Part shown: positions 7,131-47,607 of the stretch, piece by piece
Layout of the letters: every line of letters begins with the position of its first letter
Position numbering within the stretch: position 1 is the stretch's first letter
Origin: Podarcis bocagei
Taxonomy: Eukaryota
DNA: 64,000 nucleotides
Assembly (NCBI GenBank): GCA_964188305.1
Contig: OZ076892.1
Direction: 5' to 3' (one strand)
The notes under the pieces: generated by a model
What the model was told of the DNA's origin: nothing
What the model saw: the letters and a program-made list of their open reading frames with translations, nothing else
The model's database searches: none
Position numbers and translations under genes: made by a program

Positions 7131-7430
7131 ATTACTGGCAAAAGTAGTAGTTTACTTATTAAATTTTGTAATGATTTTTTGGAATCTGGACCTAATAAAA
7201 AACATAAGCACAGCATATGTAGATTGTTTGCCACTGGCTAATCGTAACATGGAACATCTGTATGTAAATCTTATCTGTTTGCGTGACTGTAACATACATC
7301 TGACCTATATCACAAACACAGAAAGCATATAAAATTCAATGTGGCATTATAATGGTGTGGTCAAAGTTATTACATATACTAGAAGAGATGATATGTTTAA
7401 CTTCATAGTGCTGGGAAATGTGTAGATTTT

Positions 7431-9183
7431 GAGACTTCTGGGTTGGCGCCATCGCCGAATGGCGGACTCCCTCCGAGCTCCGGAGGGAGTCTGCTCGGCA
7501 GGGGCTGGGTCCTACCGCGCCGGCGACGCGGGGACCCTTAAAAACCACGAGCACGGAGCCCGTGGACATGGGGACTCGGCTGGCACCGCTAGCGCCCTCC
7601 CAACTCGTGAAGGAGCCTTTTTAAAGGCTTTGGATCGGGTGCCGGGGAGTGGCGTGGTGCTTTGAGTCCACCGCTTCCCCTGCCGAGCGCAGCCGCATGC
7701 CATTCGATGGAGAGCGCTGACTTCTTCCATTGGAAATTCGGACTATCAACAACAACCCGTGAGTAATTGGGAAACCGGGTACAAAAGGAGAAAAAAAGAA
7801 AAAAAATCGGATTTGGCACGAGCGGGGGTGATCTAAAAAGGAAGTCAGTCCCCCCCGATTGTAAACATTCTAAAACAAGGACTGGGTAACCAAGATCGAA
7901 AGAGAAGTTTATTGCTGATAAAAATCATTAATTCCACGATGGGAAATTACAAGAACTGTGCTGGAGGAGAAGAGTGGAGGGTGAGAGGGAAAATGCAACC
8001 CCCCCTGGGAACCGGGGCGATTCGTAGAGCCTGGCGAAGAGAGACGGAGACTTTGACAGCTGTCAAAGTAGCTGTCAAAGCTGGAGAATATAAAGAGGAC
8101 TTTGTTACAAGGATTTTGCTGGCTAATTCTGTTAGAATTTGACACAATATGGATATAAACTGTTGGAAAATAAGGAACAACAATTTGACTTTTGGATTAG
8201 AGGATACAAAGTTACTACAATCCCCCTAGAGGGGTTTCGGGACATTACAAGTGGTCGTACGTGGAAAATCACTCTGGGATTCGCACAGGACTTATCTTCT
8301 GGGAAAGCTGCAAAACTGAAATAGTTTGTCTACAGAGGTGTTTACATTAAAAGGAGACAATAGAATTTTCTATTGAAGAAAGGAAGGGACTGGACGTAAG
8401 TTTTTGTTCCTGAACAACAAACCTCTGTAGAGATACCAGATCTCGGAATAAGAACGTTTTAGCAGCTGAACAAGACAAGAAACCTGAGAAAGTAAGGAAT
8501 AAAAAGAACAAAGGACTAACTACGACACGGAAAGAACAATGGGAGGAGCAGCAAAGACCAAGGAAATTAAAGGCCTCTATTAGACTGGATTTTTGAAGTT
8601 AAACATCATTAAAATAAATAAATTAAAAGAAAACCGGCAAGGTGGAATGGGAAAAAATCTGGCCATGGACTTGAGACCTCCAGGCTGACAACATATAGAC
8701 TGATGGACATGGGGAATTCAAACCGGGGAAGGGAGGGGGGAGTTTTGGAATCCAAAGGCTATGTAACCATCTTTTTGAACCTTCTTATATTTTTTATCTT
8801 CTATTTCTTTATATAACTTTTGTATATCATGGTATTTTGATTTGACATGTTTAAAAAAAAGGGAATTCGTGGAAGGAAATTGGGGTAGATCTTGGGGAAA
8901 AATCTTTTTTCTTTTTCTGTTAACGATGAGGGATGATGGTAAGATTGTATAATTTAAATTGGTTAATGGGTTAAATATATTAAGTTTTAAATTGGGAGTG
9001 AGAACTTGTGGAACCAAATTACGGTAATGAAAGGGGAATATAGTCGGGAGGGGGAGGAGGGAGTCCTAGAAAGAAGGTAACGAAAGTAAGGCTTTAAATA
9101 TATTTTATCTTTTCTTTTCTGTTATATTTCTATATTATTGGAAACTCTAATAAATATGATTTTAAAAAATAAAATAAAAAAAA
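7431..9183 (+). mobile_element. Full-length non-autonomous L1-like (HAL1-like) retroelement, copy 1, ORF decayed
   Basis: 17-bp TSD GGAAATGTGTAGATTTT (7414-7430, 9184-9200); CpG-rich 5' end; AATAAA and A-rich tail; homologous to the minus-strand element at 45395-47225; no RT or endonuclease ORF. Confidence 0.8.
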
Positions 9184-9319
9184 GGAAATGTGTAGATTTT
9201 TTTTTTTAAATAGAAGCCCTGGCAGCAGTCTTTATCCTCTCCAACTTGTTTGAAGTCCTCAGTTTTATTTCCAAGTGTTCTCTTTCACAGCAACAGTTGT
9301 GAAAAAGGCAGATTCCATG

Positions 9320-11811: not shown

Positions 11812-12064
11812 TACAGTGGTACCTCAGGTTACATATGCTTCAGGTTACTGTAGTCTGTAACATCCGGTTACAGACTCCGCTAACCCAGAAATAGTGCTTC
11901 AGGTTAAGAACTTTGCTTCAGGATGAGAACAGAAATCGTGCTCCGGCGGCACAGCAGCAGCAGGAGGCCCCATTAGCTAAAGTGGTGCTTCAGGTTAAGA
12001 ACAGTTTCAGGTTAAGAACGGCCCTCCGGATCGAATTAAGTACTTAACCAGAGGTACCACTGTA
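11812..12064 (+). mobile_element. Tc1/mariner-type MITE, family A (FBL intron 1)
   Basis: Same TIRs and TA TSD as the other copies. Confidence 0.85.
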
Positions 12065-12179
12065 CTTTTATTTTCACTCTGCAACCTTATGGGACTGCAG
12101 CCGTTAGGTCTCAGTTAAGGGGTGGGGAGAGTAAGGTTTCATCTCGTTTCTCTGACTTGTGTGCCCTACTCCTCTGCAG

Positions 12180-12278
12180 GTTTTAGCCCCCGTGGAGGAC
12201 GTGGGGGGCGTGGTGGGTTTGGAGATCGTGGTGGGTTTGGAGATCGTGGGGGACGCGGAGGATTCCGAGGAGGGCGAG
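12180..12278 (+). CDS. FBL: Fibrillarin exon 2 (GAR/RGG domain)
   Basis: ctgcag|GT TTT AGC CCC...CGA G|gtgag; GFSPRGGRGGRGGFGDRGGFGDRGGRGGFRGGR. Confidence 0.95.
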
Positions 12279-12822
12279 GTGAGTTATCTCTTTCTTCCCC
12301 CATTTGTACATTAGCTGTAAGCGTTTGTTGCCACCCTACAGATAGGACACTCAGATCTGCAGTGGGGCGTGCTGGGGAGAAATCAAGGTATTTAACCACA
12401 CAGTTGTGGTGGCTTGTCTCTCCTCTTGGTGGTTTAGTCAAAGGGTGGTCCAGGTGCCTTGGCCAGGTAGCAGCCATGTGTGTTTCCCTTTCTGGGTGGG
12501 AATGAGGTCTAGCCAGTTTGGGCCTGGGCACATCAGAAACATAACAGCCAAGCAGCTTAAAGCCTTCCTTCCAAACTTGCAGGTGGAGAGAGGGCAGCTT
12601 CCAAGACAATCCCTGGTCTCCTGTGGAGCTCCAGGGTTGGGAGGAAGACTGAGCCCGCTAAAGGGCTTTGACAAACCCATTTTAGCATCAAGGACTGGTC
12701 CCCAAAACCCATTCCTTGGTAATTAAGCTGAGACTAATAATCAAGGTCTGACACCAACTTTGCAAAGTACATTGCCCCCACTCCTCCTGTCCAAACATTC
12801 TGGGTCAGGAGACCTTATTAGA

Positions 12823-14076
12823 TACAGTGGTACCCCGCAAGACGAATGCCTCGCAAGACGGAAAACCCGCAAGACGAAAGGGTTTTCTGTTTTGGAGGCG
12901 CTTCGCAAGACGAATTTCCCTATGGGCTTGCATCGCAAGACGAAAGCCCATAGGGAAATGCTGGCGGTCGGGAGCAAAGACTTTCGCCCACAGCCGGCCT
13001 TCAGAAGAGGACCTCTTCTGAAGGCCGGCGGGGGGCAAAAGTCTTTGCTCCCCCCCCCGCCTGCCTTCCCCCCGCCTGCCCCGGCGATCTTAAAATGCTG
13101 GTGGGCGGGAGCGAAGCGTTCGCTGGCGACCCCCAGCATTTTAAAATCTCCCCGTGTCCTGGGGAGATCTTAAAATGCTGGGGGTCGGGAGCGTTCGCTG
13201 CCTACCCCCAGCATTTTAAAACGCTGTTCCGAAGCGGGGAGGGGGGGCGGGAACATCTGCCCCATCCGCCCCACTTCGGAACGCTGTTCCGAAGTGGGGA
13301 GGGGGGGCGGGAACATCTGCCCCATCCGCCCCACTTCGGAACGGTGTTCCGAAGGGGGGAGGGGGGGCGGGAACAGCTGCCCCATCCGCCCCACTTCGGA
13401 ACGCTGTTCCGAAGGGGGGAGGGGGGGCGGGAACAGCTGCCCCATCCGTCCCACTTCGGAACGCTGTTCCGAAGTGGGGAGGGGGGGCGGGAACAGCTGC
13501 CCCATCCGCCCCACTTCGGAACGCTGTTCCGAAGGGGGGAGGGGGGGCGGGAACAGCTGCCCCATCCGCCCCACTTCGGAACGCTGTTCCGAAGTGGGGA
13601 GGGGGGCGGGAACAGCTGCCCCATCCGCCCCACTTCGGAACGCTGTTCCGAAGTGGGGCGGGGGCGGGAACACCTTCTGAAGGCGGGCAGGGGGCGAAAG
13701 TCTTTGTCCCCCCTGCCTGCCTTCCCAGGGGCTTTTAAATCGCCCCGGACAGCGGAGAAGTCCTCCGCTGTCCGGGGCGATTTTAAAATGCCGCCCGCCA
13801 GCATTTTAAGATCGCCCCGGACAGCGGAGGACTCCGCTGTCCCAGGGTTTTTTAAAATGCTGGGGGTGGGAAGAAAAGCCCTTGCCCCCCCCCAGCCTTC
13901 AGAAGAGGTCCGGGGACAGACTGTCCCCGGACCTGGTCTGAAGTCGGTTTCCCTAGGAACGCATTAATTGATTTTCAATGCATTCCTATGGGAAACCGTG
14001 CATCGCAAGACGAAAAAACCGCAAGACGAAGAGACTTGCGGAACGAATTAATTTCGTCTTGCGAGGCACCACTGTA
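12823..14076. mobile_element. Tc1/mariner-type MITE, family B, long form with internal minisatellite (FBL intron 2)
   Basis: TA-CAGTGGTACCCCGCAAGACGAA ... TTCGTCTTGCGAGGCACCACTG-TA; termini shared with the 308-bp copy at 18933-19240. Confidence 0.85.
13221..13671. repeat. 60-bp G-rich palindromic minisatellite, ~7.5 units
   Basis: Unit acgctgttccgaag(t/g/c)ggggagggggggcgggaacagctgccccatccgccccacttcgga; the units line up in register with the 60-nt sequence lines. Confidence 0.95.
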
Positions 14077-20009: not shown

Positions 20010-21690
20010 CTTCATGTATGTTGGTTGAGCTGGACATCTCTTAGAGGAGCACCCTTTCTCGTCTGTCTTCTGTTTCCCCCACCCACTGGGCGAAAGCAGC
20101 TGCCCATGGATTGGAAGACCCTAGTAACATTAATACTTGCATTATGCCAAGCCCAACTGTCTCTGTGTTGTCTACAGACAAGCAGTGAGTCTCCAAGGAT
20201 TCAGGCAAAGGTCTTTCCCAGCCTTAGATGCTGGGGACAGAGCCTGGGAACTTCTGCAAGCAAGCCATGTACCAGGTGTGGGGAAATTTTGTTTGCTGGG
20301 GCTGGTGGTGGTCCCCATACCTAGCATATGATCTACCACCGAGAAACATCCATTTTTGTTTATTTTGTTTATTAGGAACTGGCTGGCTGCTAGTAACTGA
20401 TGCTGGGGCTTGTACAAAATAAGTGTCTTGGGTGTTCTTCACTTCTAAACCATTGACAGGGAAGGTTCCTAACAGTTTTGTTAGTTTGATCTCAGAAAAA
20501 AGTCTGAGCTGTTCCCCTAAATCAGTGGTTCCCAATTAGGGGTCCACAGCCCCATCCCCTGCCTCTCCCCCCAAAAAACTAAATTTTCGTCATTTTTGCA
20601 TGGTAATATCACAGATTTTATGGTCTGCTGTGCCAGTATCAATATATTGGCCAAAATCAGTTTTGAAATCACCCCCACGCCTGATCTGCACAAACCCCAC
20701 CTGCCTGATCTCCGCAGCTGCTCCTTCCCTCATTTCTGTGCCTGATCTCCCATTTCTGACATTGTGATATATCAGAATATTGTGATGTTTAGCTGTTGAT
20801 ATATCACGATGCGGAAAACCAGATATCGCTCAGCCCTAGTCTGTTTTTAATATAGCTAAAATCCTTTGCTTATTAGGGGCTACCCCACATTTTGTTCAGA
20901 AAATTGCTTTGCAGAGGTAACTACCATAAAGTTATCAAAAGTAAGGGGTCTGTAGCTTGGCTTTTGAAAAATAAGTGATCCTCAGTAATTAGCTAACTGG
21001 GAACCGCTGTCCTAAATAAATGTGGGTAAAGTAGGTTAAATGAACACTGCTGCTGCCTCACTGCTGTTGATTTAATCACAAAAGTGCAGGGGCAGATCTT
21101 GACATTGTAGACTGGAAGTGGGAAACAGGGTTAGGGGGCCAAATCTGGAAGTCCCTCACCCCCTGTGGCCCACTTTGCTGGGTGGGTGGAGCCACCCACC
21201 TGTCAATCACCTGGTGCCATCATGACATCAGGGTAACTTGGCTTCAAAGGAAATAATTGGAAGCACAGCCTAAGTGTGCTCCCAGCCCTTCCTTGCAGCC
21301 CGGCTTGAGTTTAAGCCACAGCTGCAAAGGCAAAATGATATTTTGCATTGAAAAGTCCACCCTCGTTACATGTGGCACCTTTTTCTGTTGCCATGTATGG
21401 TGACAGGAAGAGGCACGAATATAAAAAGAACTGACTTCCTGATGCAAAGGAAGAATCAAGTGTGTACTCCTACTTCTTTGTCCTCTAAGCCATGGCTTGA
21501 AATTTGCTGTGGCCAAAGCAGACAGGCCTGGGAAAGGTGGGTGTGTTGAATTAAGCCAGGGGTCCTGTGTTAGTGCTCTAGGCTCTACTGTTTTTCTTTT
21601 GCCTGATGACCTTATTTCAAGTGAGGAAAGCGATAGGATTTGCAGGGCAACTTCCAGGCCCATTGTTCAATACGCCCCCTTGCTTTGCAG

Positions 21691-21803
21691 GCATGGTAGA
21701 TGTGATCTTCGCAGATGTGGCTCAGCCCGACCAGTCACGTATTGTGGCTTTAAACGCGCACAATTTCTTGAAGAATGGTGGCCATTTTGTCATCTCCATC
21801 AAG
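21691..21803 (+). CDS. FBL: Fibrillarin exon 7
   Basis: [38 protein letters not shown]|gtaat. Confidence 0.97.
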
Positions 21804-22559
21804 GTAATGTTTAGTGCGATTGTTATATTTTTTCACTGTATGACCTTCAGTGGGTCGTTTTCTTCGCCTTTGGCTGGAGAGTCAGCGGGGGCTAAGAGCT
21901 GGTTTCCGGTAGTCCATTGGAATTCCATCTCCCTCATCAAGACGACCAACCATTCTGGGGCAGGATTCATAAGTCTACACCTTCTTCTGGTCATGGCAGT
22001 TTGCTATCAGTTAAGACACTTATACAAACATAAAGAATTATGCCCAAACCTCGCTGGTTCAGATATCAAAAGAGCCTAGATCATGCCCGCTTCCTTTCTT
22101 GTGCTTTGCTGGTCAGTGGCAGCTATTTTCAGGCAGAAACCATGGAGAGTGTGGTGGGGCGAGCGAATGTATCAGAGTAAGAGAGATCAGACAAATCAAT
22201 TTTTCCTTTGTCTCTCTCCTGCTCGTTGGCTGCTGCCATTTTAGGACAAAATCACAATGGGCAGGGACCATTTCCCATGAAAGCTTTGTGGCCCTTTGTG
22301 GCCGTAAGCCGCACCTAAGTGTATAGAGATATGGCTGATATGCCTTCCACCCAACTGACAAATGTTATTCCTATTTGGACTGCTGGAGGTAATCTCTGGA
22401 GTTGTGTTGGAGAACCCCAGGACTGTTTTCTTAGAGGGGGGAGGCAACATTCATGCTAATGCTGCCTCAAGGTGTCCAGTAATTTGAGCAATCTGGAGGT
22501 GAGTGACCAGGTGGGCTGACAGCATGGTCTTTAGATGAGGGAGGTAAAGGTGCCCATTT

Positions 22560-27645: not shown

Positions 27646-29099
27646 CAGGATGAGTTCCACTTCTGTACTCTTCATCTTCAAGTGGTAGCTTGGGAGTTAC
27701 AGGCAGTTCACAGCCTAAAATGGGTCACACCCAACATCAGCACCATTTAAAAAAAGTTGTTTAGGATATGTTTTTAAATTGAGGAAGACAACCCATCTAG
27801 GTGTAAGAGGAAAAATGGAGGCTGGCAAGATGTGGGGTGGACAGAGAAGAGAAATATGACTGCGCTGTAAGGCAATATAATGGCCAACATTCATTATGTA
27901 AAACTGACCAGAGAGTTAGCTCTAGAAATCTGATTTTGCATACATATGCTTGTAAAATACATACTGGGATCCTGAGATGACCAAAGTACTCATCTCTTTA
28001 AGTTTGTTTCCAGGCTCAGTGAAGACGTGATATAAAATCAGATGGGTCTCTGTCCTGAAGGCAAGACATAGATGGGCATGGGGAAGGGACATCTCATGGT
28101 GTTGGATGTTAAAAAAATTGGATGACTCTGTAGTTTCTCTTGGGCTGGGTGGCAGATGTTTCTCCTTGATGGTATGGTTTCAGTACACACCAGCACCACT
28201 CTGCCCCATTATTACATGGATTATTACATATCTTTGGTGGCGTATATGGGACAAAAATAAAATTCTATGAGAAATTTACTATGCATGTTAAGACTAGACT
28301 AGACTAGCATCCCAGTACTGGATATGAAGGAAGCTTCTCCAGAGCTGTGGAATGTTGCATCGCAGCATCATCCTGTAGTCTGTACTGCCTGGATAGCACC
28401 TAGGGCTGCATTGTAGGCTTCTCCCACATGTAGCAGGATTAGGACTGTTAAGCGCTGCACCATGCAGTTAGCATCCCCAACTGAGAGGGGGGTGTCATTT
28501 CAAATGCTTCCCTGACCTACAAATCCAAATGCCTAATATTTTTGATCGTTGGTGCTTCTTAAAATACTGCTATCGGCAGTACCATCTCCATGCCACCAAG
28601 GTGATGTCAGCACACTGCTCTGGTATGCAGAAGGTGATCGTAAGGAACTTAAGAGGCTTCCCCAGCCCTGCCTGCGGAAGGACTGAAGGACTGCACACGG
28701 GGCCTTCTGCATTCAAAGCAGGTGCTCTACCACGGCCAAATATCACTAAGGTCTAGGGGAGAAAGGTTTCAGATTGCCCTTTTGTTCTGCTCTTAAGTCT
28801 CCCCCTCCGCTATCCTCTGGGAAAGCATTCAACGGGTGCTAGGCTTTGGGGCACAAATCAAGGGCACCCCTCAGTAAAAATGAGGACGGTCCCCAAATGC
28901 AAATGGACTGTCTTGCTACGTTTTTTGGAGTACTGCCACTGCCATCTAAAGGGAGTGGAGGGATGTATAAAGACCACTGCGCCCAGAAGCCTTAGCATTA
29001 CCTAACTGCGCCGCTGTACGAAACGATAGGGAGCACCCACACTAACCCCCTTCCTTTCAATCTGCAGTGGTACGGTCCAGAATTCTACCCTCTCATTCT

Positions 29100-30120
29100 G
29101 TGTCACGTAGAGCGAGAGAACGGCTCTAAGCTTCGCGGCTGCCATTCTGGAAAGGGACGTGAGTGAGGCGCGGGGTGGAGGGGAAGGAGCGCTATAGACA
29201 CACACACACGGCGGCCCGCAGACACTTGCGCATGCGCACACCCGTTTGGGAGGGAGGAGCGTCGAAAGGGAAAGAGGCACGCGCTCCTGAAGAGAGAAAG
29301 AGCGCGCGCGAGCGCGCGTCCATTTCTTCCCCCTCCCCATCCCGGCCCGCTGCCTCACGTGGCCACGCCGGCGGGGCGCATGCGCTCGGCGGCGGCAACG
29401 GAGGCGGTTTGTTGTGGTCGCCATTTTTTGTTGCATTACTGGGAAATCCCGGCGCCGGAGCAGCCGCCGGAGTACGCCCCTTGCGCTGGGGGTGGGGGCG
29501 CAACCCGCCCGCCTGCCGCGCCCCGCCCCCAGCGCGCTTCTCCTCCTCAGCCCCAGCTTTGAAACACGCCGCGGGCCGCAGCCGCCTCCTCAGGTAAGAG
29601 ACCCGCCCGCCTGCCTGCCGCTCCCCATCCGACCGCCCTCCGGGCCCTTCCCAGGGAGAGGAAGGAGAGAGGAGGGGAGGGAGGGACGGAGGGGAGGGAG
29701 AGAAAGGCGGGCGCCGTCGCGCCTTCCTCTTCCTCCCCGACCCCCCCTCCCCCAACCGCCACCCGTCCAATCCTTCCCGCCTTTCTCCTCAGCTCATCCC
29801 GGCTGCGGCGGGCAGATTCTCCCGGGGAGCCGGACTCTCTCCCTCTCTCGTCAGGCCCCGCCCCTGGCCGGCTCTTCCCCGGCTTCGCCTCGCCTCGGGC
29901 GGGACCCCGCTCGTCCTCCCGGCCGGGCCGCCCCGCCCCACCCTCATCCCCTCCCCGCCGCCCGACCCCACCCTGATTCGCCGCCGCCGCCGCCTTTTCT
30001 CCCACTTCCTTCCCCCAAAACTTCTGCCCTCCGCAGCGCAGCCGCCCGTTTCTGCCTTCTCCTCCCCGATAGGCCCGGCCTTCCTTTACTGAGTTCCCAC
30101 ATCCTCCTCCTCCTCTGATC
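29100..30120 (+). promoter_or_regulatory. DYRK1B: DYRK1B CpG-island promoter and non-coding exon 1A (donor after 29593)
   Basis: Very CpG-rich; NRF1 TGCGCATGCGCA 29227-29238 and GCGCATGCGC 29376-29385, E-box CACGTG 29356-29361, YY1 CGCCATTTT 29419-29427; consensus donor CAG|GTAAGA at 29593/29594; lies directly downstream of FBL as in human. Confidence 0.75.
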
Positions 30121-44935: not shown

Positions 44936-45394
44936 TTGTCTATTTTATTCTTATTTGCTTTAAATAGTTGACTTTTTTCAATGCTAGGCAATTAAATTCT
45001 TCAGGTCGATGGGCTGGGATGCTCTGCTTGTAGTCCTACCAGGATTTGGAGACACGTAGAAGGGCCTCCTCTATGGCAGGAGGATCTCTGGTTCTGGAAT
45101 GATTCCTCCTTAGAAGTGGGCCTGTCTTCAACATTACTGGATTTCTGATGCCAATGGAAAACATTTAATGATTTGCTACTAAAAAACACAAAACAAATAT
45201 TTTAGATATTGTGATTTAGATTGTAATTTTTTGCAAATCATAACATAGCTGCCTTGAATATGATTTAACTAGAGAAAGTAGGCAAACAAATAAATGATGT
45301 TAACAATATACAATATTCACAATAGTATTTCTCCAATAATTCTGTACATTACAGTCATACATTTAATTTTTATATCAGTTAAGTATTCATTTTA

Positions 45395-47225
45395 TTTTAT
45401 TTTTTTAAAAATTTTTATTTGGTTTTCTGCTTTTATAAAAACAAAACACACACAAAGAAAAAACACAAAACAAAAACATGTATAAAATCAGCAAATCCCC
45501 ATTTCATAACCTTGTTCCCTGACTTCCCCCCACCCCCCCTCGTGCATCCCAGTTCCCAAGATTATATCAGCAAGTTGGTGTTTCTCCTCTTAACCATCTT
45601 ATTCATCTTATTACCTCTTTTATAATAAAAATTGATTTTCCTAAGTTGGACTTAAGTTCTCTTCCATCGATTTTCATTTTGTCTTAATTAAGAGTCATAT
45701 TAACCAAACCTAAAAGTCTTAAGAGTTTTTAAGAATCTCCTCTTCCCTCCCTCCCATCCCCGGTTTTTGTCCCTTCCCAATAGAAATCTAAATTCGAGAT
45801 TCTCAGCCTGGGTTCCTCACGTCCGAGGCTTTCAAGTCTATTTCAGTCCCTCTCCGCCTGTCTTGTTGGTAGTCCTTTATGTCAGTCGTCGAGTCTGGAA
45901 AGAGTTCTTTCACCATCAAAGTGTATTCTCTTCCCACAAGGAGATTTGAAAGTAACTGCTGAAAAGTTTCCACAAAGCCTGTATCTTCAGAATCAAAGTC
46001 CAAACTGAGGCCCCAGTCATATTTCTTTATTTTAAGTTCCTGTATTCCATATTGTCCCGGGACCTCCTCCTTCTTCTTCTGTGTCTTTCGCAGACTTGTG
46101 GTAGATAAGTTCCCAGCATCTCCTTGCTTGTGTTCCACAGATGTCAGCTTTTGGTTGTTACTTCCCAAGGTTACTTCTTCTTTTTCTTGTTGTTTAGTCT
46201 CTTCCACCTCTGTAGATATTGTTTCCCATTCAGCTGTGGATTCTTTCTCATTCAGGTCCTCAATACAGAGAGCAGAGTTGCCTGTTCCCAAGGTCATAGT
46301 CACAAGTTGTTTGTTCATGGCCAAGCTCTGCTCTTGTAAGGTTCCCACCAGTTGAAACATCCTTTCGATTTCCACTAGTAACTTTCCTTCCACAGCCATT
46401 GTATCTATTGTAGTTACACAGAATTCCCCCTAGAGGGAATCTGGTTACTTATTAGTCTTTTCTCCAACAGTCCTTTAACAAATTATTATTACTTTGTTTC
46501 CAACAATTTTGGCTCAATTATAACTCGTCTTAGTCCAGAGGGATCTTAGATAGCGATTTTTCCACTTTAAACCGCCCGTTTGACAGCTTTGACAGCTGTC
46601 AAACTCCGCAGCTCTTACACAGGCACAAAGGCAGGACTTTCCCGAGCCCGGGAGGGGGGGTTGTTCAAAACAAAAAGAAGGTTTCCAAAACTCCACTCTC
46701 CAGCCCAAAATTTCCTTTAGCCAAATCTTGAAAGTTAATGTCCTTTTTAACTCACCCCACCAAGGGTAGGCTCTCCAGCTTAGCTCTTATGTCGTTGCGT
46801 AGATCGTCTGCAAGGGGGGGTGCGGACTTCCTTTTAGCACACCCCCCGGTCGTCTCCAATTCAGGGTAAATTTTTTAAAGTCCCAATCCGTCTTACTCAC
46901 GGGTGATTCTTTCAGTCCAAATTTTCAAGGAAGGAAGTCAGCGCTCTCTGGTCATGGCTCGCGGCTTCGCTCCACCGAGGTAGCGATCGACTCTCAGTGC
47001 CACGCCACCCCCGTATCCTCTCCGCAGCCTTTAAAAAGGCTCTTCGTGGATCAGGGGGGGGCGCTTAAGGCACCCGCCGAGTCTTCAGTCCGCAGGCATC
47101 CGCGCCTGCGGTTTTTAAGGGTCCCCGTGTCGCCGGCGCGGCAAAGACCCGTCCTCGGTAGAGCCGATTCCCTCCGCAGCTCGGAGGGAATCCGCCATTT
47201 CCAGATCGCGTCAACCCGGAAGTCC
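45395..47225 (-). mobile_element. Full-length non-autonomous L1-like (HAL1-like) retroelement, copy 2
   Basis: 15-bp TSD TAAGTATTCATTTTA (45380-45394, 47226-47240); A-rich tail on the minus strand; 5'UTR homologous to 7431 onward. Confidence 0.8.
45803..46399 (-). CDS. 198-aa ORF of the HAL1-like element (ORF1-like, possible coiled coil)
   Basis: ATG in good context (acaATGg), E/K/Q-rich; start and end motifs (..GK.L...LQ; D.R.PG*) recognisable in decayed form in copy 1. Confidence 0.5.
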   Translation of the reverse strand: MAVEGKLLVEIERMFQLVGTLQEQSLAMNKQLVTMTLGTGNSALCIEDLNEKESTAEWETISTEVEETKQQEKEEVTLGSNNQKLTSVEHKQGDAGNLSTTSLRKTQKKKEEVPGQYGIQELKIKKYDWGLSLDFDSEDTGFVETFQQLLSNLLVGREYTLMVKELFPDSTTDIKDYQQDRRRGTEIDLKASDVRNPG

Positions 47226-47607
47226 TAAGTATTCATTTTAAATTAACCATTCAAATTTCAGTTTTACATTTTACAACAATAAATAGCTCCTTCCGAAGAC
47301 TATTTATCCAGATCAAGTAAACTTCCTAAAAAATTACATTCTTTTAAAAAATTATCAAAATAGTTCATTTTGCAAGCTCCTTCTCTATTTTCTCTTTGTT
47401 CCAATAAGTTAGCTTTGCCATTAATCATTTTTCCAACAGTTCTTTTACCAGTTGTTGAGGTTCTTCCTTTTCCAGGTCTGTGCAATTAAGATTTTAGTTG
47501 CCATTAATAGATAGTGAATTAACTCTTTCTACTTTCTATTCAGTATCCTTTAAAGGTCAATTAAAAATGCTTTCATGTTTGCAATTAATTTTTTTTTATT
47601 TATATAT

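Follow-up and report, generated by a model that had tools for sequence, protein, structure and literature searches.

Two diverged copies of a probable LINE-1-dependent retroposon family with a folded RNA leader in the lizard Podarcis bocagei

Two related insertions of about 1.8 kb

A 64,000-nucleotide stretch of contig OZ076892.1 from the lizard Podarcis bocagei (assembly GCA_964188305.1; the whole stretch is referred to below as the window) contains two insertions of ~1.8 kb, copy 1 on the plus strand and copy 2 on the minus strand (Table 1). A first-pass annotation of the window had placed both copies and ascribed to them A-rich tails and perfect target-site duplications (TSDs). Its coordinates are right, and the duplicated bases are identical at 17/17 and 15/15 positions. 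Both copies start with (G/GA)GACTTCYGGGTTG and end with AATAAA and a short A-rich tail, part of which, AAAAAATAAAATAAAA, is common to the two. The longest open reading frame (ORF) in either copy (1.75-1.83 kb each) encodes 198 amino acids (aa) and has no Pfam domain. This leaves no space for a reverse transcriptase (RT) or an endonuclease in either copy, as the first-pass annotation had also claimed, and the Pfam search of the larger ORFs of the window detected no RT and no LINE-1 (L1) domains. We interpret the two copies, with a probability of roughly 0.8, as members of a single old family of non-autonomous poly(A) retroposons with multiple copies, which derives from lizard L1 and was most likely mobilised by L1.

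Alignment by blastn matched nucleotides 3-820 of copy 1 to nucleotides 2-818 of copy 2 with 65% identity (E = 6e-72). A second high-scoring segment pair (HSP), colinear with the first, runs across the end of the ORF into the first part of the 3′ untranslated region (3′UTR; E = 2e-4), and shuffled controls of the comparison gave 0-2 trivial HSPs. Identity between the copies is 74% in the leader (element nucleotides 1-336), 56% in the spacer between leader and ORF, 49% in the ORF region and 54% in the 3′UTR. The landmarks that had been listed as common to both copies are all present in both by alignment, and in the same order: GACTTCYGGGTTG, AATGGCGG, the CTCCCTCCGAGCTSCGGAGGGAG hairpin, GGGGACCCTTAAAAACC and ACCCGTGAGTAA, then the palindrome TTTGACAGCTGTCAAA, a CCC..TAG..GGG motif and an ORF end that reads ...PG-stop. 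A search of the window for the composite pattern GACTTCYGG-N(2-25)-ATGGCG gave two matches (0.00 expected), one at the 5′ end of each copy, and no additional family copies were found within the 64 kb. Judged by these alignments, the two copies are true yet distant relatives with one ancestral architecture.

The proposal of a real, long-lived, multi-copy family thus held up, given colinear homology despite 26-50% divergence and relatives of the ORF on several chromosomes of Podarcis lilfordi. The alternative that had been named as its refutation is that the two copies arose by independent internal deletions of 6-7-kb L1s and represent no self-propagating family. An L1-type 5′ end is what such deletions would leave, and derivatives of L1 in which the 5′UTR is joined to the 3′UTR do arise. 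However, independent events would not be expected to give diverged copies an architecture common to both that extends to the ORF end and the 3′UTR junction, nor many diverged relatives of the ~200-aa ORF that begin and end alike. Such relatives lie on at least five P. lilfordi chromosomes, and no other source contig exceeds 1.9 kb. We therefore regard independent deletion as very improbable.

Retrocopies (processed pseudogenes) of a cellular mRNA would share the layout of the elements, with a 5′UTR, an ORF in a good Kozak context, a 3′UTR, AATAAA and a tail. Yet the insertions retain their own promoter head with an L1 signature, and none of the databases searched contained a longer or intron-bearing homologue. 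Moreover, the two sequences have diverged too far from each other to be recent copies of one gene, although perfect TSDs and a ratio of observed to expected CpG (CpG o/e) of ~1 make both of them look young. We give a retrocopy origin hardly any credence.

Table 1. Positions in the window of the two elements and their parts
Feature	Position	Strand	Basis
Copy 1, complete element, 1753 nt, non-coding member	7431-9183	+	TSD-bounded; 5′ start GAGACTTCTGGG; A-rich 3′ tail; homology to copy 2
Copy 1, 5′ TSD GGAAATGTGTAGATTTT	7414-7430	+	17/17 identity with 9184-9200
Copy 1, 3′ TSD GGAAATGTGTAGATTTT	9184-9200	+	same 17-mer as 7414-7430
Copy 1, structured RNA leader and L1-type promoter head	7431-7766	+	fold; CpG o/e; pattern match
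Copy 1, ETS-like ACTTCTGG	7434-7441	+	
Copy 1, YY1-like core ATGGCG	7459-7464	+	
Copy 1, palindrome TTTGACAGCTGTCAAA, core TGACAGCTGTCA	8052-8067	+	kept in both copies; hairpin z -3.8
Copy 1, decayed ORF remnant (GTG for ATG, 8 premature stops, end AMDLRPPG-stop)	8251-8688	+	translation
Copy 1, AATAAA signal (9149-9154) and A-rich tail	9149-9183	+	sequence; motif positions
Copy 2, complete element, 1831 nt, coding member	45395-47225	-	TSD-bounded; 5′ start GGACTTCCGGG; A-rich 3′ tail
Copy 2, 5′ TSD TAAAATGAATACTTA	47226-47240	-	15/15 identity with 45380-45394
Copy 2, 3′ TSD TAAAATGAATACTTA	45380-45394	-	same 15-mer as 47226-47240
Copy 2, structured RNA leader and L1-type promoter head	46890-47225	-	fold; CpG o/e
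Copy 2, ETS site ACTTCCGG	starts 47223	-	
Copy 2, YY1-like core ATGGCG	47193-47198	-	
Copy 2, spacer: G-run/C-run hairpin with GGAAGTCC loop, palindrome TGACAGCTGTCA (46590-46601), pre-ORF hairpin	46400-46889	-	
Copy 2, intact ORF, 198 aa: N-terminal heptad helix, low-complexity middle, basic tail ...DLKASDVRNPG-stop	45803-46399	-	ORF list; homologues; AlphaFold (AF2)
Copy 2, G-quadruplex-type run GGGGATGGGAGGGAGGG in 3′UTR; copy 1 counterpart CCGGGGAAGGGAGGGGGGAG	45745-45761	-	regular expression and alignment
Copy 2, AATAAA signal (45414-45419) and A-rich tail	45395-45419	-	sequence; motif positions

The L1-type 5′ end and the folded leader

The clade-1 L1s of Anolis have CpG-rich 5′UTRs of ~1.3 kb that are conserved between divergent families, a 5′ extremity with the consensus GACTTCCGGTG-N8-ATGGCG, and a 3′ end of AATAAA plus poly(A) (Boissinot and Sookdeo, 2016; PMC5381506). 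Both copies open with this published signature, GACTTCCGG...ATGGCG, with the motifs 17 nt apart as against ~10 in Anolis. Because the 5′ end carries a signature published for lizard L1, dependence on L1 appears to be the best reading of the family. The leader of each copy is a CpG island, with a CpG o/e of 0.94 in copy 1 and 1.06 in copy 2. Of the motifs in this head, ACTTCCGG is a site of the ETS family, and ATGGCG corresponds to the core of the YY1 site that mammalian L1 uses. An ETS-type and a YY1-like motif within a CpG island fit an internal promoter that would travel with the element.

The first ~336-340 nt of both copies are predicted to fold into the same closed multibranch architecture. 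The minimum free energy (MFE) of the leader is -175 kcal/mol in copy 1 (z -6.15) and -165 kcal/mol in copy 2 (z -6.59), and 0/100 dinucleotide shuffles of either did as well. The terminal helix pairs ACUUCYGGGU with ACCCGUGAGU, and the landmark ACCCGTGAGTAA is the 3′ strand of this leader-closing helix. The other parts are an 11-bp hairpin, a 12-bp helix that closes an inner three-way region, and three more arms. In the consensus structure there are 93 pairs, each formed in both copies, and in 9 of them both bases have changed; sliding the pairing partners by 1-3 columns reduced such double changes to 0-1. The 12-bp helix is an example of compensatory change, as it is formed by GCUCGGCAGGGG/CCCCUGCCGAGC in copy 1 and by GCUCUACCGAGG/CCUCGGUGGAGC in copy 2. 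Columns that differ between the copies account for 12% of paired and 44% of unpaired positions (Fisher p = 3e-11).

As the consensus fold was fitted to both sequences, a fairer test is to map the MFE structure of copy 2 alone onto copy 1. By this test, 90 of the 109 pairs were kept, 11 by double change, and 17 were broken, whereas 3000 random placements of an equal number of substitutions broke 39 on average and never fewer than 23. For the data available, which are two sequences, this is a strong case that the leader fold is kept by RNA-level selection. Compensatory changes are not explained by promoter function alone, and thus point to an RNA-level role of the leader. Rfam searches with both copies at E-values up to 1 returned no match, and the leader is therefore not derived from a known small RNA.

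The spacers of the two copies have three smaller hairpins in common. The first is a G-run/C-run stem with the loop GGAAGUC(C), the second is the palindrome around TGACAGCTGTCA, and the third spans the CCC..TAG..GGG motif ahead of the ORF. The palindrome core resembles a TALE-homeodomain/E-box site. In copy 2, the 538 nt from element nucleotide 289 to the ORF (46400-46937, minus strand) contain 0 ATG, where 7 are expected (P ~0.001). Its three upstream ATGs are all inside the leader, where their upstream ORFs also end, and the ORF itself starts in the strong Kozak context ACAATGG. An ATG-free spacer followed by a strong start context speaks for access to the ORF by scanning of an unspliced RNA. 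The spacer of copy 1, the non-coding member, contains three ATGs.

The landmark ACCCGTGAGTAA (7757-7768, plus strand; 46890-46901, minus strand) looks like a 5′ splice site, and YYYCTAG/G lies ~470 nt downstream of it, just ahead of the ORF. We downgraded the corresponding intron, ACCC/GTGAGTAA ... YYYCTAG/G, because GTGAGT is the 3′ strand of the leader-closing helix, and further because the segment is present in both inserted copies and is ATG-free in the coding one.

The loop sequence of the first spacer hairpin, GGAAGTC(C), is the exact complement of the first bases of the element, GGACTTCC. It occurs in the hairpin loops of both spacers (46818-46825, minus strand; 7840-7846, plus strand) and again in the 3′UTR of copy 2 (45521-45527, minus strand), and may be an ETS site or a partner for 5′-3′ pairing.

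The ORF of coding members and the non-coding copy 1

A word search with the copy 2 protein recovered seven full-length relatives with 42-70% identity. A profile search of 1.84 billion representative proteins gave eleven matches, which are 129-215 aa long except for one spurious low-complexity protein, and L1 ORF1p was not among them. Altogether, 15 or more relatives are intact despite their divergence; they measure 170-215 aa, and their C-terminus is invariant. At 50% identity the ORF falls into at least nine clusters. Fifteen diverged members have in common the N-terminus MAAxGKLxAEIERMFxLVGxLQE and a C-terminal tail, KDYQQNRRRGTERDLRASD[VL]R[NSD]PG, with the stop always directly after it. 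The named relatives are "hypothetical proteins" encoded on the P. lilfordi chromosomes mentioned above, and the remaining ones were found on Logan contigs that measure 0.9-1.9 kb and in no case exceed the element length. Simulated neutral substitution rarely spared the 198-codon frame: it was still open in 1.5% of the simulations at 70% identity, falling to 0.35% at 55%. Together with the many diverged open frames, the simulation implies selection for an open frame in active lineages.

The first-pass annotation had described the family as RT-less and similar to HAL1, the ORF1-only derivatives of mammalian L1. Lack of RT and endonuclease, marks of target-primed reverse transcription and an L1-type 5′ end all agree with this description, but its "ORF1-only" part was not sustained, as no match to Transposase_22, ORF1p or RRM was found. 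In detail, Pfam searches of 15 family proteins at E-values up to 10 detected no Transposase_22 and no convincing family at all. A profile search of the PDB, which includes human L1 ORF1p and ORF2p, gave chance matches only, and the ESM Atlas gave only sub-threshold fungal matches. A search with residues 150-198 alone, aimed at C-terminal fragments of L1 ORF2, found family members only. AlphaFold predicted a confident helix at residues 3-50 and gave the rest low confidence (mean pLDDT 49.5), with no RRM or CTD in the model. Heptad a/d positions in the helix are L7, I11, M14, V18, L21, S25, M28, L32 and M35; a complex prediction for three copies of ORF residues 1-60 scored 0.10, which counts neither for nor against their association.

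These results bear on the possibility that the family is a true HAL1, with a 198-aa ORF left over from L1 ORF1p after heavy shortening to the N-terminal coiled coil. Such an origin would be compatible with an L1-derived, L1-mobilised family and concerns only where the ORF came from. The ORF occupies the ORF1 position behind an L1-type 5′UTR, and its heptad pattern and confident helix are N-terminal; lizard L1 ORF1p likewise begins with a coiled coil, which is unusually conserved (PMC5381506). On the other hand, Transposase_22 was found in 0/15 members, no L1 ORF1p appeared in the profile searches of representative proteins or the PDB, neither RRM nor CTD was predicted, and homology cannot rest on a short coiled coil alone. 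We consider a shortened ORF1p possible, if rather doubtful.

The conserved ORF end was also compared with 2A ribosome-skipping peptides (D[VI]ExNPGP). This candidate was rejected, as ASD[VL]R[NSD]PG-stop is one residue short, has no E, has a variable residue in place of N, and has a stop instead of the final P. At the DNA level, a conserved block at 45803-45830 (minus strand) straddles the stop codon, and the G-quadruplex-type run follows ~40 nt further on. The block and the G-run might be a termination-linked or RNA-level signal.

An ORF had been reported for both copies. The ORF end, ...PG-stop, is indeed found in both, but copy 2 alone is coding. Despite its GTG start and 8 premature in-frame stops, the ORF region of copy 1 stays in one frame through to AMDLRPPG-stop. 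Taken as a whole, its translation does not resemble the family profile significantly; its two ends alone gave weak colinear matches, the best of them to the P0014 cluster (LLGKLQN.NSLSTEVFTL, ...NRQGGMGKNLAMDLRPPG). Copy 1 looks young because its TSD is intact, its leader fold is preserved and its CpGs are undecayed. Decay after insertion would need ~20% divergence to produce 8 stops, and we estimate that an intact 34-nt TSD pair would then have P ~0.001. A young copy with 8 stops therefore implies that the source RNA carried a dead ORF and was copied all the same. The ORF is thus probably not needed in cis, and the continued copying of an ORF-dead lineage argues that it is the leader that would be.

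Elsewhere in the window, the ORF at 21606-22079 (plus strand) matched Fibrillarin in Pfam (E = 2.7e-13) and is an FBL exon, consistent with the FBL-DYRK1B neighbourhood that the first-pass annotation had noted. Two GC-rich stretches (12001-14000 and 28001-30000; GC 0.58) contain many overlapping ORFs on both strands with no Pfam matches, and are probably CpG islands or the first exons of host genes.

Proposed mobilisation by L1 and comparison with known elements

We propose the following route for the family. Transcription would start from the internal L1-type promoter at the first bases of the element, with the ETS-type ACTTCCGG at +2 and the YY1-like ATGGCG at about +28, both in the CpG island, and the 1.8-kb RNA would be polyadenylated downstream of AATAAA. 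Its first ~290-336 nt would adopt the closed multibranch structure. In coding members, ribosomes would scan through the ATG-free spacer and make the ~200-aa protein with its heptad helix and basic C-terminal tail. This protein is probably an RNA-associated helper in the role of ORF1p, although it is not recognisable as ORF1p. Supplied in trans, L1 ORF2p would nick the target and reverse-transcribe from the A-rich 3′ end, which would leave the 15-17-nt duplications.

The partner could instead be a LINE other than L1, for example from another clade present in squamates, in which case the L1-like head would be convergent. The target of copy 1 is consistent with this, as its nicked strand reads TTTCC/CA, which is non-canonical for L1, and the AAAAAATAAAATAAAA part of the tail is common to both copies and would have been templated. 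However, the nicked strand at copy 2 reads CATTTT/AAATT, which is the classical L1 endonuclease site TTTT/AA, and both the length of the TSDs and the AATAAA with an A-rich end are marks of L1. Partners of CR1, L2 and RTE elements need a matching 3′ end with its own microsatellite, and their TSDs are short or absent. The 5′ signature of the copies agrees with that of lizard L1. A non-L1 partner is therefore improbable, and mobilisation by L1 is the reading that we retain.

Several points nevertheless weigh against it. In addition to the non-classical target of copy 1, we infer trans-mobilisation by ORF2p from insertion marks only, and transcription, translation and the role of the protein are likewise steps that we infer. 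The L1 origin of the leader leans on a published Anolis consensus whose motifs are spaced differently. Covariation in the leader comes from two sequences alone; it is strong for the available data and is not proof. The evidence from the ORF is subject to ascertainment bias, as protein databases list open frames only.

With this in mind, we read the family as HAL1-like and L1-dependent. HAL1s arose several times independently in mammals (PMC5753468) and are non-autonomous L1 derivatives of ~2 kb, as the lizard elements probably are. Both have a 5′ end of the L1 type, one ORF where L1 has ORF1 and no ORF2, together with a poly(A) end and TSDs, and both propagate as a family. HAL1, however, encodes a recognisable ORF1p, whereas the lizard ORF has no detectable Transposase_22, RRM or CTD. 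The lizard family also differs in its squamate host and in that at least one of its lineages, that of copy 1, is ORF-less. Another partial counterpart is HeT-A of Drosophila, a non-LTR element whose sole protein is a Gag-like one of its own and which obtains reverse transcriptase from trans, as proposed here; it differs in being telomere-specific, in having a recognisable Gag, and in its unrelated lineage and biology.

Clade-1 L1s of Anolis (L1_AC) share with the lizard family GACTTCCGG followed by ATGGCG, a CpG-rich 5′UTR, and AATAAA with an A tail. They are ~6 kb long and encode ORF1, with a coiled-coil domain (CCD), RRM and CTD, as well as ORF2, which the present family lacks, and their pre-ORF region measures ~1.3 kb as compared with 0.8 kb here (PMC5381506). 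SVA and LAVA elements of hominoids are non-autonomous, 1-3 kb long, mobilised by L1 and transcribed by Pol II, with TSDs and poly(A), which is much as we propose for these copies (PMC3287187, PMC5174737). They differ in being non-coding composites of other repeats without an L1 5′UTR or ORF. Our literature search found no description of the present family.

More tentatively, and with the odds against it, we suggest that the folded ~300-nt leader, which lizard L1 and this parasite would have in common, is a cis-acting module that gives the RNA access to the L1 machinery, and that the ~200-aa protein is a new, non-ORF1p helper. If this is true, the leader might recruit ORF2p or the ribosome, in a role like that of the SRP-like fold of Alu. 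The helper would be kept by coding lineages, and non-coding ones such as that of copy 1 would borrow it or do without.

The presence in one window of a coding and a young, non-coding member suggests a division between parts that are needed in cis, namely the leader and the 3′ end, and a part that can be supplied from elsewhere or dropped, namely the ORF. An L1 leader that is kept as a fold, and not merely as a promoter, would give an RNA-level role to a region of L1 that is usually read as DNA only. Parasites of L1 of the HAL1 type have been described from mammals, and their counterpart in a squamate would mean that this strategy also evolved separately there, in a genome with many L1 lineages active at once.

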